DNA of 64,000 bases from Macrostomum hystrix (taxonomy: Eukaryota > Animalia > Platyhelminthes): positions 1,116,001 through 1,180,000 of the forward strand of contig CATNEN010000010.1 of the NCBI GenBank assembly GCA_950097015.1. Reading direction: 5' to 3'. Every line of letters starts with the position of its first letter. Position 1 is the first letter of the stretch. Shown piece by piece: positions 1 to 7,644 of the stretch. The position numbers and the translations under genes were made by a program. The notes under the pieces are model-generated. The model saw nothing but the letters and a program-made list of their open reading frames with translations, was not told where the DNA came from and searched no databases.

Positions 1-700
1 GCACAAGCGACGCTGGCGTCCGCGTGCTCGGTGGCGGCGGCGACCCGGCGGCATCGTTGTCGCCGCTGCGCCGGCCCAAGATTCGAGCCGCGGCGGCCGC
101 CTTGCCTCGGCCGGCCAGGGCGAAGATGACAACGCCGGCGCGGTTAATGAGCGGCAGGGTGCAGGTGACGCGAGTCGGCGGCGGCTTGGGCGAGTCGAGC
201 ACCGCGGCAATGCCGGGCCGCTGCTCGCTGAGGGCGATGTGGTCGGGGAACAGAGAGCAGGTGTGGCCGTCAGGGCCCAGGCCGAGCAACATGAGGTCGG
301 GACCGTCGTCCAGGATGCCAGCCGACCGCAGCTGATCCTCGTAATCTTTCGCGGCCGCCTCCGGCGTCAGGCTGGCGTCGACAATTAGAACTTTGGCGGC
401 GGAGGCGCCGACGCCACTGTCCGCCGACAGGAAGGTGCGGGCGAACTGTGCGTGGGTTCGCTCCGGATCGTCCATCCCAACCAGGCGCTCGTCGCAGTAG
501 AACAGGGTGACGCGGGTCCAGTCGATGACGGCGCTGGCGAGGCCACGCGTCAGGAAGTCGACCAGGCTGCCGCCGGACAGGCCAACGGAGCAACGACCGC
601 GCCGGTCCACACAGTCGCCGATGACGGAGGTGACGAGGTCGGCCAGGGCGGGCACGAGCTGCGCCTCGCTCGGGTAGACGAAAACACGCTTGTCGGGCTG
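1..700 (-). CDS. PGLS: 6-phosphogluconolactonase, large coding exon; 3' end runs off the window; no genomic ATG
   Basis: Hand translation of the minus strand from 700: QPDKRVFVYPSEAQLVPALADLV...VGLSGGSLVDF...VTLFYCDERLV...DLMLLGLGPDGHTCSLFPDH...VLDSPKPPPTRVTCTLPLIN. The GLSGGS, DER, LLGxGPDGHTCSLFP and DSPKPPPxRVT motifs are diagnostic. Acceptor ttccttccag lies at 701-710. This frame is missing from the ORF track because it lacks a start codon. Confidence 0.93.
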
Positions 701-712
701 CTGGAAGGAAGG

Positions 713-1130
713 CAAGCAGGAACAAGTACCTCAGTATTGGGCAGCAGGAACAAAGACATCAGTATTGGGCAGCAGGAACAAGTACCTCAGTATTGGGCAG
801 CAGGAACAAGTACCTCAGTATTGGGCAGCAGGAACAAAGACCTCAGTATTGGGCAGCAGGAACAAAGACCTCAGTATTGGGCAGCAGGAACAAGTACCTC
901 AGTATTGGGCAGCAGGAACAAAGACCTCAGTATTGGGCAGAAGGAACAAGTACCTCAGTATTGGGCAGCAGGAACAAAGACCTCAGTATTGGGCAGCAGG
1001 AACAAAGGCATCAGTGTTAGGCAGAAGGAACAAAGGCATCAGTATAGGGCAGCAGGAACAAAGACCTAAGTATTGTGCAGAAAGAGCAAAGAGCTCACTA
1101 TTGGGTAGAAGGAACAAGGGCCTCACTATC
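713..1130. repeat. 28-bp minisatellite (aacaagtacctcagtattgggcagcagg) directly upstream of the PGLS acceptor
   Basis: Tandem units are directly visible and degenerate toward 1130. They explain ORFs 452..1069, 690..1163 and 793..1020. Confidence 0.9.
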
Positions 1131-1215
1131 TGCAAGAACAAAGAACCACAAAAACAAAACTGAAAACGGTATGGCCTAAAACTAAACAGAGACAGTCTGC
1201 TGGTCTCATAATTGG

Positions 1216-1221
1216 TTTATT
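1216..1221 (-). terminator. Candidate AATAAA polyadenylation signal for ATPIF1
   Basis: TTTATT on the + strand, about 420 nt downstream of the ATPIF1 stop. Position only; no transcript evidence. Confidence 0.4.
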
Positions 1222-1639
1222 TTTTTGCGCAGCACATAATCTATTACTCACAGTAGTGAGTGGTAAGACATGCGACTAAATTTACCCGGATAACAATCAA
1301 CAGTGACTGGTGGGGCTGAAGAAACAAAAAATAGATCAGGCTCAGCAGACGGCCGCCAGCCTACAGTATAACTAAAGGTTGGGCGGGAAGCCTAGGAAGA
1401 GATGAACAATTTTACACGGCAAACTAAACTACAAAAAGAAATTTGAATTTAACAATAGTTAACAATTCGTTTTCTTCACTTAAAAAGTAACCAACCACAC
1501 AACTATGAGGGCTGAAAGATTAGAAGGAACTGACGTTGGGCGGTACCAGAAATGTTCGAGCTAAAGTTTAAGGCGAAATCGGGCGCACAGTGTCTGGCTC
1601 ATGAGTTCCTCTTAAAGTCTTCAGTAGTGAGCCCAAATC

Positions 1640-3680
1640 TCAGTCCTTCTTTTTCTCTCCTTCGTGCTCCTTGGCGCTCAGGTCGTTCATGCGAGCCTTG
1701 TGCCGCTGGATGGCCTCCAGGTGGCGCACGATCTCCTTCTCGTGATGGTCCACCTGCGGGTGGGGCACGGCTGCCCACAGTCAGCGGATTCGAACCCATG
1801 ACCACTCACTGAGACAATGCTAATTTAAAACTGATGAAAATAAATAGTAGATCTCAAACTGAGGACAATGAGGAGCTTGTCTCAAACTGAGGACAATGAG
1901 GAGCTGGTCTCAAACTGAGGACAATGAGGAGCAGATTTCAAACTGAGGACAATGAGGACCTGGTCTCAAACTGAGGACAATGAGGAGCAGATTTCAAACT
2001 GAGGACAATTTGGAGCTGGTCTCAAACTGAGGACAATTTGGAGCTGGTCTCAAACTGAGGACAATGAGGAGCTGGTCTCAAACTGAGGACGATGAGGAGC
2101 TGGTCTCAAACTGAGGACAATGAGGAGCAGATTTCAAACTGAGGACAATTTGGAGCTGGTCTCAAACGGAGGACAATTTGGAGCTGGTCTCAAACTGAGG
2201 ACAATGAGGAGCTGGTCTCAAACTGAGGACGATGAGGAGCAGATCTCAAACTGAGGACAATTTGGAGCTGGTCTCAAACGGAGGACAATTTGGAGCTGGT
2301 CTCAAACTGAGGACAATGAGGAGCTGGTCTCAAACTGAGGACGATGAGGAGCAGATCTCAAACTGAGGACAATTTGGAGCTGGTCTCAAACGGAGGACAA
2401 TGAGGAGCTGGTCTCAAACTGAGGACGATGAGGAGCTGGTCTCAAACTGAGGACAATTTGGAGCTGGTCTCAAACTGAGGACAATGAGGAGCTGGTCTCA
2501 AACTGAGGACAATTTGGAGCTGGTCTCAAACTGAGGACGATGAGGAGCAGATCTCAAACTGAGGACAATTTGGAGCTGGTCTCAAACGGAGGACAATTTG
2601 GAGCTGGTCTCAAACTGAGGACAATGAGGAGCTGGTCTCAAACTGAGGACGATGAGGAGCAGATCTCAAACTGAGGACAATTTGGAGCTGGTCTCAAACG
2701 GAGGACAATTTGGAGCTGGTCTCAAACTGAGGACAATGAGGAGCTGGTCTCAAACTGAGGACAATGAGGAGCAGATCTCAAACTGAGGACAGTGAGGAGC
2801 TGGTCTCAAACTGAGGACAATGAGGACCTGGTCTCAAACTGAGGACAATGAGGAGCTGGTCTCAAACTGAGGACAATGAGGAGCTGGTCTCAAACTGAGG
2901 ACAGTGAGGAGCTGGTCTCAAACTGAGGACAGTGAGGAGCTGGTCTCAAACTGAGGACAGTGAGGAGCTGGTCTCAAACTGAGGACAGTGAGGAGCTGGT
3001 CTCAAACTGAGGACAATGAGGAGCTGGTCTCAAACTGAGGACAATGAGGACCTGGTCTCAAACTGAGGACAATTTGGAGCTGGTCTCAAACTGAGGACAA
3101 TGAGGAGCTGGTCTCAAACTGAGGACAATGAGGAGCAGATTTCAAACTGAGGACAATTTGGAGCTGGTCTCAAACTGAGGACAATGAGGAGCAGATTTCA
3201 AACTGAGGACAATTTGGAGCTGGTCTCAAACTGAGGACAATGAGGAGCTGGTCTCAAACTGAGGACAATGAGGACCTGGTCTCAAACTGAGGACAATGAG
3301 GAGCTGGTCTCAAACTGAGGACAGTGAGGAGCTGGTCTCAAACTGAGGACAATGAGGAGCTGGTCTCAAACTGAGGACAATGAGGACCTGGTCTCAAACT
3401 GAGGAAAATAGTCTCAAACTCGCACCTCATCCTCAAGGTGCTCCTTGAGCTTGGACAGCTGCTCCTTCTGCAGCCGGCGGAAGTACTCCTCCTCCCTAGC
3501 GGCTTCCATCTTGCCGAAGGCTCCGCCGGCCTCGCGGATGCTGCCGCCGGAACCGCCACCTTTGCCGGAGCCGCGGCCCAACTCATCGCCGGACATGGCG
3601 CGCCTGGTGGCGGAGAAGATGGCAGCGGAGGGAGCTGCCGGGCGGAGCTGGAGCAGGCGAGCGAAGCGGCACAAGGACAT
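1640..3680 (-). CDS. ATPIF1: Mitochondrial ATP synthase inhibitory factor 1, 2 exons, 122 aa
   Basis: Exon 1 is 3680-3426 ([10 protein letters not shown]...[49 protein letters not shown], donor GTGCGA). Exon 2 is 1753-1640 ([25 protein letters not shown]...KKKD*, acceptor cccgcag). The junction is phase 0. It has the IATP signature [20 protein letters not shown] and a His-rich coiled coil. Confidence 0.95.
1852..3418. repeat. 28-bp minisatellite (tctcaaactgaggacaatgaggagctgg), about 55 copies, filling the ATPIF1 intron
   Basis: Directly visible, with recurring variants (caatttgg, gcagatttc, gacgatg). Confidence 0.95.
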
Positions 3681-3873
3681 GACCGGAGTAGTGTTGCACT
3701 GCAAACGTGGGCCGGTGGGAAATGCAAGTAGCATGGATTGAGAGGAAAGATGATATATAAAAATACAGGCTAAAATAGACATTAGACAGTGCACTTTCTG
3801 GCAAGCCGTTTAGACTGAAACAGCAAAACTGGTCTACTAAAAGTGATTCGCCAAACAATTTAAAACCTGCTTT

Positions 3874-3879
3874 TTTATT
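3874..3879 (-). terminator. Candidate AATAAA polyadenylation signal about 180 nt upstream of the ATPIF1 acceptor
   Basis: TTTATT on the + strand. It could terminate the upstream GFER transcript; position only. Confidence 0.25.
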
Positions 3880-4124
3880 TGCTCAGTAAATACCTAAAGC
3901 ACTTTGCTTTGGGCGCTTTAGCTTGACAATGAAACCGTGCTTGCCGAAATAAAAAAATCGTCTTATTTGTCAAAATACCGGCGTGTGTGCAATGTCAGCA
4001 CTGCGGCAAACCATATTTAATTCTCAGAATGGGCGATGACCTGCTGTAGCCAGGGTGCCACTTGGGACTTGGACCTGAGGACAAGATAAAGGCTGGATTT
4101 CGATTTGGAGGACGCAATCGAAGC

Positions 4125-4255
4125 GGGATCTATGGACCTGAGGCGGGATTTGAGGACTTTATGAACGCGGGATTTGAGGACATAATGAGGCGGGATTTTT
4201 AGGACCTTATGAACGCGGGATTTGAGGACATAATGAGGCGGGATTTGAGGACCTA
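4125..4255. repeat. Short tandem repeat (gcgggatttgaggac-containing units)
   Basis: A few imperfect copies are visible. Confidence 0.7.
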
Positions 4256-4744
4256 ATAAAGGCAGCATATGAGGACCAGATCGGCGCATCTGTACGTCAA
4301 ACTTTGTCTTACTAAAGAAACTATAAAAAGCAACAAAGCAAACAAGGTTAAATAACTAACCATATACGCTGATATACTTTGGTATCTGGAGCACACAGCT
4401 CAAGCGCAGTAAGCAAGTGCAGCTATCAATGGTCAGACGCTGGATAAAACTTACAGACATGAACGTCAGAATGAAAGCCAAGTGGATAGCCAGGCATTAT
4501 CTATAAGCAAGAACGATCTAACAGAAATGCCATAACAGAAGTGCATAAACATTCTAAGAAATACAAAAGTACATTCATTATCCAATGACGCTCAACAAAT
4601 TATTCACTAGACGGATTAAATTCCAAAAATTGTTTAAGTGATACTTGGGAGCACAATAGAACAGTAAAACGTGTCTGCGCTAACTTTCAGAGATGGGTAA
4701 TCAGAAAAACATTTAGGAAGGGGCTCAGAGAATGGGATAACTAG

Positions 4745-5440
4745 GAGCAGAAAAGGGAGAATGGAATAAGGGAATAAACTGGGAGAATGGAATAAGGGAA
4801 TGAGATAACTAGGAGAAAAAGTGGGGGAATGGAATTAGGGGATAAGATTACTGTGAGAAGAAGTGGGAGAATGGAATCAGGGAATGGGAGAATGGAATCA
4901 GGGAATAGGATAACTAGGAGAAGAAGTGGGAGAATGGAATCAGGGAGTAGGATAACTAGGAGAAGAAGTGGGAGAATGGAATCAGGGAGTAGGATAACTA
5001 GGAGAAGAAGTGGGAGAATGGAATCAGGGAATAGGATAGCTAGGAGAAGAAGTGGGGGAATGAAATCAGGGAGTAGGATAACTAGGAGAAGAACTGGGGG
5101 AATGAAATCAGGGAGTAGGATAACTAGGAGAAGAACTGGGGGAATGAAATCAGGGAGTAGGATAACTAGGAGAAGAACTGGGGGAATGAAATCAGGGAGT
5201 AGGATAACTAGGAGAAGAACTGGGGGAATGAAATCAGGGAGTAGGATAACTAGGAGAAGAACTGGGAGAATGGAATCAGGGAATAGGATAACTAGGAGAA
5301 GAACTGGGAGAATGGAATCAGGGAATAGGATAACTAGGAGAAGAAGTGGGAGAATGGAATCAGGGAATAGGATAACTAGGAGAAGAAGTGGGAGAATGGA
5401 ATCAGGGAATAGGATAGCTAGGACAAAAAATAGAGAATGG
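4745..5440. repeat. 42-bp purine-rich minisatellite between GFER and ATPIF1
   Basis: Unit ggagaagaagtgggagaatggaatcagggaataggataacta. Explains ORFs 4741..5652 and 4829..5473. Confidence 0.9.
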
Positions 5441-5563
5441 GATAAAAATGGGACAAAACGTAAGAGGAAATAAGAATAAGAAAAATGAGGAGAATGAAGC
5501 AAGGGGGATATCCAAACAATGGTATTGTGGAGGCACAGCCAGTTTCTGAACCCCAGTTGCGAG

Positions 5564-7232
5564 TCAATAGTCACAGGACCCATCTGACCATCCGTTGCGC
5601 CATCGGTCGAGCACCTGGTCGCAGTTGAACAGCGGCTTGCCCAGTCGATCATTAACCAGGTTGTGCTGCTCGCAAAGCCACCGGTTCAGGGCCCGGCCGT
5701 CCCGCACTGGAGGCGGAGACCTGCAATTGAAAATAAAAGGACCGTAAAATGAATTGCGTTCAATAACATTTGTCCAAAGAAATATAATTGTGCAGATATG
5801 GATACCTCATTGCCTTTCGACTCTTATACAAGCTAACACTTTAGGAAAGACGGGATAGGGGCCAGTCACTCCAGGAAAGACGGGATAGGGGCCAGTCACT
5901 CCAGGAAAGACGGGATAGGGGCCAGTCACTCCAGGAAAGACGGGATAGGGGCCAGTCACTCCAGGAAAGATGGGATAGGGGCCAGTCACTCTAGGAAAGA
6001 CAGGATAGGGGCCAGTCACTCCAGGAAAGACGGGATAGGGGCCAGTCACTCCAGGAAAGATGGGATAGGGGCCAGTCACTCCAGGAAAGACGGGATAGGG
6101 GCCAGTCACTCCAGGAAAGATGGGATAGGGGCCAGTCACTCTAGGAAAGACAGGATAGGGGCCAGTCACTCCAGGAAAGACGGGATAGGGGCCAGTCACT
6201 CCAGGAAAGACGGGATAGGGGCCAGTCACTCCAGGAAAGACAGGATAGGGGCCAGTTACTCCAGGAAAGACAGGATAGGGGCCAGTCACTCCAGGATAGG
6301 GGCCAGTCACTCCAGGAAAGACGGGATAGGGGCCAGTCACTCCAGGAAAGACAGGATAGGGGCCAGTCACACCAGGAGAGACAGGGTCAATTACACCCGT
6401 AAAGTTAAGATAAGAGGTTCCAAGGACCCAATGGCGAACGGGAGGGAGGTGGGTAAGTTACGCATGAAGGACAGGAGGGTCTATTACCACTGAAGAATAC
6501 CAGTAGCCTATGAAAACGTTTTATAATATACGAGTAAAAGAGACGGCAAAATAAAAATAAAAAGCACAGCGGCTCACTTGGCTATGTTGGCCTGAAAGTC
6601 CTCGCTGCAGTGCGGACAGGGAAACAGGCGGGAGAAGGCACGCAGCAGGGAGTCCATATCGGTCGCCTGCTGAGCGCTAGGCTGGTCCGGGTAATAAGCG
6701 GCTAAGGTGTGCAGCACGGACCAGGACTTGCGACCCAGTGACACCTGTGGGAGATGGGATTTGCTTCAATTAACATTTTTTATAGATGGATAGAGCTTAA
6801 ACCTAGTCCAGTTGGGCCAGATGAGCAGTCAGTAGCCAGATGAGCCAGATGAGCAGGCCAGATGAGCAGTCAGGGTGAGTGGGAGTGACAGATCACTGAC
6901 TAAGACACTACCTGAGGGTGAGTGGGAGTGACAGATCACTGACTAAGACACTGTAGGCGAGCAGAATCAGGAAAGGCCGCTGTCACCTGATCAAGCGGGC
7001 ACTGGGGAGCGATCCTTTTCTGACTGTCGCCCAGTGCCTGGCCGCTTTTCTGCAGCTTGCGCCGTCCAGTGAGGACATCGTTGATGTCGATGCAGGCGCG
7101 ACAGACGCCCTCCAGTAGGGGATTTCGACCCAGCGGTGCCAGCGGAGGCTGCAAAGTTTGACGATTGCCGGAATCCGAAATTTGATCGGCATCATCGGCA
7201 GATGCGTCGAATTCGTAGCGAGATCGGCGGGA
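5564..7232 (-). CDS. GFER: ERV1/ALR FAD-linked sulfhydryl oxidase, 3 coding exons, 189 codons, no genomic initiator ATG
   Basis: Exon 1 is 7232-6987 (SRRSRYEF...LEGVCRACIDIN...QCPLDQ). Exon 2 is 6744-6578 (VSLGRKSWSVLHTLAAYYPDQPS...FSRLFPCPHCSEDFQ). Exon 3 is 5720-5564 (PPPVRDGRALNRWLCEQHNLVNDRLGKPLFNCDQVLDRWRNGWSDGSCDY*). It has the CRAC shuttle motif, the CxxC active site and the HNxVN..LGKP.F.C and RW..GW motifs. All junctions are GT-AG with matching phases. Confidence 0.93.
5845..6375. repeat. 30-bp minisatellite in GFER intron 2
   Basis: Unit ccaggaaagacgggataggggccagtcact. Explains ORF 5807..6370. Confidence 0.9.
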
Positions 7233-7644
7233 CTGAATGATTTGTAATCAAATTTAATGTTGATCTGAATTTTTGTTGGTTTCCAGCTCTAATCAAAAGA
7301 ATGTTAGCAACATACAAAAATTATCAGACAATGAAATATGATTTGCTGCTAAAAGTGGCAGTTTCTCAACATTTAGTACTTATAAGTTTTTTCTGCCACA
7401 TGGTCTGTCAAATTATTGCCTACTGTTGTAGCTTGTTAAAGCTTGTTTTGTATTGTGTTTTTTCATTAAGTTTTTGCCTTTAAATGGCACTATTAAAACT
7501 ATATGACACATTTTTCAGAGGTAATTATAAAACTCAGATGATGACAAATATATATATACCAATATGGAATTCAAAATTAGTTACTAAAAGTACTAAGATA
7601 TAAAGTACAAAAAAATATATTTATCAGAATTTCCTGCTTTGCAT

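Follow-up and report, generated by a model that had tools for sequence, protein, structure and literature searches.

The PGLS gene of Macrostomum hystrix, predicted to encode 6-phosphogluconolactonase (6PGL), has no start codon of its own in the genome. It lies on the minus strand at the edge of the window, the 64,000-nt stretch of DNA that was analyzed. The junction of its exon with a spliced leader (SL), the reading frame across this junction, the absence of a genomic start, and the conservation of the arrangement in Macrostomum lignano were observed directly. We consider it highly probable (about 0.9) that PGLS pre-mRNA is trans-spliced to the SL at the AG at 702-701 and that the leader AUG is the initiator of the full-length enzyme.

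According to this model, trans-splicing at AG 702-701 would replace all upstream RNA with the 35-nt leader. The mature mRNA would read UUGCAUG followed by CAG CCC GAC AAG, with the leader AUG as its first AUG and in frame. Ribosomes would presumably start there and produce a 255-residue enzyme beginning with MQPDKRVFVYPSEAQ (M-Q-P-D-K-R). The same reaction would resolve a putative polycistronic ATPIF1-PGLS precursor. The features on which the following description is based are listed in Table 1.

Table 1. Features of the PGLS locus and its surroundings (window positions unless a locus is named)
Feature	Position	Strand	Evidence or remark
PGLS coding exon	1..700	-	PF01182 186.6 bits; TIGR01198 pgl 173 bits
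First genomic in-frame ATG (codon 76)	473..475	-	Follows the invariant GLSGGS motif; M. lignano has Pro here
CAG, codon 1 of the genomic frame (Gln); also a possible second AG acceptor (NAGNAG)	698..700	-	CAGCAG conserved in M. lignano
AG of the used trans-splice acceptor (ttccAG); leader joined to base 700	701..702	-	Contigs diverge at L001 2201 (= window 701)
Minisatellite, 28 bp, pyrimidine-rich, 14.8 copies; most of the spacer (outron) before the acceptor	715..1129	-	Repeat analysis
In-frame TGA 5' of the acceptor; closes the frame in unspliced RNA	731..733	-	Frame translation
AATAAA, the only one between the ATPIF1 stop and the PGLS acceptor	1216..1221	-	Motif scan
ATPIF1 exon 2, ending KKD, TGA 1642-1640	1640..1753	-	Upstream neighbor, same strand; conserved in M. 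lignano
ATPIF1 exon 1, coding part; ATG 3680-3678, donor GTGCGA at 3425	3426..3680	-	PF04568 84.2 bits
Minisatellite, 24/48 bp	4139-4277		Spacer/intron array
Minisatellite, 42 bp	4725-5423		Spacer/intron array
Minisatellite, 30 bp	5843-6385		Spacer/intron array
Minisatellite, 33 bp, 24.5 copies	L001 1-810 region		Just downstream of PGLS; contigs run into the array

A coding exon with no genomic start codon

PGLS consists of a single exon of 254 genomic codons with no intron. The window contains codons 1-233, and the stop codon TGA is located past the window start, at G000:C10:1115936-1115938 (L001 1436-1438, where locus L001 is G000:C10:1114501-1118800). Read 5' to 3' on the minus strand, the sequence is cctgcttgccttccttccAG, followed from position 700 by CAG CCC GAC AAG CGT GTT TTC GTC TAC CCG, and the translation of this frame is AQY*GTCSCLPSFQ, followed by QPDKRVFVYPSEAQLVPALADLV. 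The first-pass annotation of this DNA had described PGLS as a gene without an ATG that opens in phase 0 at a splice acceptor, with ttccttccAG (702-701) followed by CAG CCC GAC AAG CGT GTT TTC from 700, and had placed an in-frame TGA at 733-731; both descriptions were correct, with the TGA present on the minus strand. No Met codon was found in frame between this TGA and position 700 (GTCSCLPSFQ), and the first 225 nt of the exon are free of ATG in all three frames. The in-frame Met codons of the exon are codons 76 and 137 only, in agreement with the earlier estimate that the first Met lies about 75 codons into the fold. The genome thus contains no AUG able to give full-length PGLS, with the TGA 11 codons upstream, the first Met at codon 76, and no candidate for a phase-0 cis-spliced exon in 701-1900. 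Unspliced RNA would be unable to make the protein because this TGA closes a frame that has no ATG behind it.

The genomic PGLS exon was used as the query for homology searches, without leader sequence or a leading Met. The translation following the acceptor matched PF01182 with 186.6 bits (cut-off, 27), with its residue 11 at profile position 2, and matched the NCBIfam pgl (6-phosphogluconolactonase) profile TIGR01198 with 173 bits (cut-off, 124.45). Solved 6PGL structures (PDB chains) aligned from PGLS residue 6, and in the alignment with animal 6PGLs, the fish initiator Met shared a column with Q1 of PGLS. The columns invariant among animal 6PGLs are all kept in PGLS, namely SGGS (42-45), CDER (69-72), G.DGHT.SLFP, DSPKPPP.R, and K200. 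Based on the profile matches and these columns, the gene product is assigned as a 6-phosphogluconolactonase, and lactonase activity is predicted. The first codons after the acceptor had been proposed to encode the extreme N-terminus of 6PGL, and the start of the fold at residues 6-11 and the position of Q1 bear this out, indicating that the exon opens within a residue or two of the required protein start.

PGLS is the one strong PF01182/pgl locus in the assembly. Another PF01182 locus, on C38 (L015), is glucosamine-6-phosphate deaminase (nagB, 234.8 bits). A second, weaker pgl-like domain was found in two exons at G000:C1:25284216-25286087 (L014). Its TIGR01198 scores, 63.8 and 31 bits, do not reach the cut-off, and the locus possibly represents the lactonase half of an H6PD-type gene. 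The 6PGLs of both Macrostomum species contain a Pro/Ser-rich insertion of about 12 residues (GDNDAAGSPPPPSTRT; residues ~205-225, window 20-90, minus strand) that is missing from the other animal 6PGLs aligned.

The leader junction at the PGLS acceptor

Window positions 1-700 were found in eight public runs from two studies, and the contig alignment was examined over L001:820-2300. The junction was covered by assembled contigs of runs X5 and X6 (organism C, study P2) and X3 (organism B, study P1), which are not on record as RNA. These contigs follow the exon gap-free up to L001 2201 (window 701) and then leave the genome, reading ATGCAATAAATTGAGTCTTCGC (plus strand) over 22 (X5), 22 (X6), and 13 (X3) letters beyond window 701. 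The reverse complement, GCGAAGACTCAATTTATTGCAT, together with G701 corresponds to positions 13-35 of the leader CGGTCTCTTACTGCGAAGACTCAATTTATTGCATG (PMC8629364). G701 is compatible with both the genomic AG and the last base of the leader, and it follows from the GT-AG rule that the mRNA reads TTGCATG and then CAGCCCGACAAG. The conserved 254-codon ORF continues the frame of the leader AUG, as TTGCATG followed by CAGCCCGAC is translated as M-Q-P-D-K-R.

All contigs reaching the acceptor (3 of 3) carry the leader. No contig of any run extends over the flanking positions 702-800, and no cis joint into the PGLS exon was reported among the contigs, which, being assembled, drop rare variants. The contigs end 13-22 nt into the leader, where the assembly graph was probably broken, since many transcripts share the leader sequence. 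In a protein word search, M. hystrix proteins were absent from the results, as were transcript-derived proteins with MQPDKR at the N-terminus. Junction reads at 700 or 697 had been named as a check of the trans-splicing proposal, and the leader was indeed joined at 700 in the contigs of X5, X6, and X3. The accompanying proposal that the SL AUG gives M-Q-P-D-K-R stands as far as the join at 700 and the frame of the AUG are concerned, and from these we infer initiation at that codon.

The contigs contained the junction at 700 only; that at 697 was absent from them, although minor forms are dropped from assembled contigs. Splicing at 697 (second AG at 699-698) would also be in frame and would give M-P-D-K-R. 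Hence, of the earlier suggestion that the tandem CAGCAG offers two in-frame acceptors, the frame of both sites and the use of 700 held, whereas the use of 697 was not seen in the contigs. The sequence TTCCAG fits the trans-acceptor motif [T/C]TNCAG (YTNCAG) described together with the 35-nt spliced leader of M. lignano (PMC8629364), whereas the second site, CAGCAG, does not.

The genome of M. hystrix contains at least 23 exact copies of the leader CGGTCTCTTACTGCGAAGACTCAATTTATTGCATG, many of them ~11.6 kb apart. In the copy examined (L007), the leader is followed by a GTAAG donor, an Sm-like U-run, and a terminal hairpin. The leader ends with TTGCATG, and the AUG is located directly 5' of the GU donor. 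Exact copies recur about every 11.6 kb on G000:C15, C17, and C42.

It is conceivable, though rather unlikely, that the conserved in-frame CAGCAG yields two leader-initiated forms, MQPDKR and MPDKR, with a site preference that is perhaps species-specific, and that a step of the pentose-phosphate pathway is gated by trans-splicing, with a possible tie to SL usage in neoblasts. Methionine aminopeptidase specificity is such that the MPDKR form alone should lose its Met, and the MQPDKR form should not. If this proposal were true, the output of PGLS would be gated entirely by trans-splicing, since the strongest 6PGL gene of the genome has no start of its own, and such a gate could link this output to the strong use of the SL described for neoblast genes.

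The M. lignano orthologue and the upstream gene

The best protein match of PGLS was BOX15_Mlig009380g2 (P0001) of M. lignano, with 81% identity, which is registered at NCBI as "hypothetical protein, partial" (Mlig_3_7 assembly). This model starts with PDKRIFVYPGEAQ (PDKR), at a Pro codon. M. lignano PGLS occurs at three genomic loci, which read gcaccgCAGCAG and then CCGGACAAGCGC. The frame 5' of its CAGCAG is closed by a stop 24 codons upstream, and no in-frame ATG is present between that stop and the CAGCAG. The M. lignano sequence has a single Met, at residue 134, and Pro at the position of M. hystrix Met76; judged from its sequence, it has no conceivable internal start. The similarity between the DNA sequences of the two species starts exactly at CAGCAG, and the 75 codons 5' of Met76 are conserved between them as protein. 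At each of the three M. lignano loci, PGLS is preceded by a gene for IATP in the same orientation. The shared startless frame with its in-frame acceptor indicates that the arrangement is older than the split between M. hystrix and M. lignano.

Thus, BOX15_Mlig009380g2 resembles M. hystrix PGLS in its CAGCAG acceptor, a frame without a genomic ATG, and the same-strand IATP gene upstream. It differs in having three paralogous loci, a model that begins at a Pro codon, and a spacer minisatellite with an unrelated repeat unit. Compared with the junction seen in M. hystrix, the M. lignano model opens one codon further into the frame, as would fit the use of the second AG in that species.

In M. hystrix, the upstream neighbor of PGLS is ATPIF1, and its stop is separated from the PGLS acceptor by 939 nt, or by 524 nt when the 415-nt array is subtracted. 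The AATAAA at 1221-1216, the only one in this spacer, is likely the ATPIF1 poly(A) signal, with the 28-bp array (715-1129) behind it. The criterion used for operons in M. lignano was a repeat-adjusted distance of <1 kb, as repeats inflate operon spacers (PMC8629364). With respect to the criteria of that study, PGLS has an upstream neighbor on the same strand, is a trans-spliced downstream gene, and lies at an adjusted distance of <1 kb. It also shares with the SL-resolved operons of M. lignano (Ustyantsev and Berezikov 2021, PMC8629364) a YTNCAG acceptor and a spacer consisting mostly of repeats. Judged by gene layout and junction, with criteria defined for M. lignano rather than M. hystrix, PGLS probably forms the second part of an ATPIF1-PGLS polycistron. 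The ATPIF1 ATG at 3680 is itself located 18 nt behind an acceptor of the YTNCAG type (cacgtttgcAG, then tgc). Leader splicing at this putative acceptor would place seven more residues (MCNTTPV), read in frame from the leader AUG, before the mitochondrial presequence.

Almost the entire ATPIF1 intron consists of a 28-bp minisatellite (1852-3409, 55.6 copies). On the minus strand, nearly every spacer and intron in window 715-6385 and L001 1-810 contains a minisatellite of its own (Table 1), and arrays are found at matching places in M. lignano. Homology of the minisatellites between the two species, and between the two 28-bp arrays of M. hystrix, was considered and rejected, as the best rotation scores were not above those of shuffled sequences. 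The periodic matches in the DNA alignment of M. hystrix and M. lignano are caused by the near-equal periods of the arrays (28 and 29 bp). The contigs of X5 and X6 extend at least 616 nt past the PGLS stop (L001 820-1438) and then ~200 letters into the 33-bp array, which suggests that the PGLS 3' UTR is at least 800 nt long and contains a minisatellite.

Alternative sources of the start and known leader-AUG cases

A start supplied by a hidden cis-spliced upstream exon with its own ATG, the SL form being a by-product or minor form, is very unlikely. Contigs show the presence, not the absence, of transcript forms, and the spacer (701-1640) does hold nine ATGs. However, no gene-strand ATG in 701-1900 has a GT[AG]AG donor behind it in phase 0, and the sole phase-0 GTs after spacer ATGs are poor donors or leave an intron of 28 nt. 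Furthermore, the leader was present in every contig reaching the acceptor, similarity to the M. lignano DNA does not extend past the acceptor, and the M. lignano model also lacks a start. One cis exon candidate, the ATG at 1271-1269 with the GTGAGT donor at 1251-1246 (1246..1271, minus strand), was rejected, as it is in phase 2, lies in the ATPIF1 3' UTR, and has no RNA support; the first-pass annotation had already judged this pair to be out of frame with the acceptor, and the phase of the donor was confirmed. Translation from codon 76 into an N-terminally truncated protein, with the leader AUG ignored, is highly improbable. On the mRNA, the ATG at 475-473 does come next after the leader AUG, but a start there would drop 75 residues, including SGGS and CDER, and remove one third of the fold. 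Moreover, M. lignano has Pro in place of this Met and no Met other than residue 134, and the 75 codons preceding it are conserved as protein.

The junction contigs could also be derived from DNA, namely from a reverse-transcribed, leader-carrying retrocopy of PGLS rather than from mRNA, given that the junction runs are not on record as RNA. This explanation appears extremely improbable. A 1300-base query (window 1-1300, covering most of the exon and the spacer) was single-copy in the assembly, in which PGLS is the one strong PF01182/pgl locus, and no contig lay on the flanking 702-800. An exon joined to the leader without its flanking DNA is the pattern expected of RNA, and the assembly has no second copy of the 1300-base query that might represent a retrocopy.

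The start of translation at a leader AUG is an already published mechanism in flatworms (Cheng et al. 2006, as cited in PMC12582326 and PMC9851317), and PGLS is a well-supported but ordinary further case of it, which leaves existing knowledge of the mechanism unchanged. Every flatworm leader reported has a terminal ATG that is usable as a start codon (PMC12582326), and in the paper on the M. hystrix genome, the leader ATG was marked as such (PMC10468722). Cheng et al. [quoted passage not shown] PGLS resembles the flatworm SL-AUG mRNAs of this type in that the leader AUG abuts the donor, the exon is startless and in phase 0, and the AUG is needed for the full-length protein; it differs in being a different gene of a free-living macrostomid, represented here by its RNA junction. 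The slORFs of nematodes, Oikopleura, and trypanosomes (slORFfinder, PMC9851317) likewise receive their start codon in trans. They often use near-cognate NUG codons and are often new or alternative ORFs, whereas in PGLS a canonical AUG opens one conserved ORF.

PGLS provides a clean, RNA-supported case, conserved across species, in which a core metabolic enzyme would be translatable only after trans-splicing. The leader Met should be placed at the front of Macrostomum gene models that are labeled "partial" or start at an internal Met, such as that of the M. lignano orthologue. In transgene design, a genomic PGLS fragment without its acceptor context would not be translated.

A second gene without an ATG within 7 kb, GFER, had been noted in the first-pass annotation, and this agrees with the data at the sequence level only. 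In exon 1 of GFER/ALR (window 6900-7320, minus strand), actttgcAG is followed by CCT; the exon runs from 7148 in phase 0 with no in-frame ATG and ends at a GTGACA donor after CPLDQ. The leader AUG placed on this exon is predicted to give MPPLAPLGRNPLLEGVCRAC.
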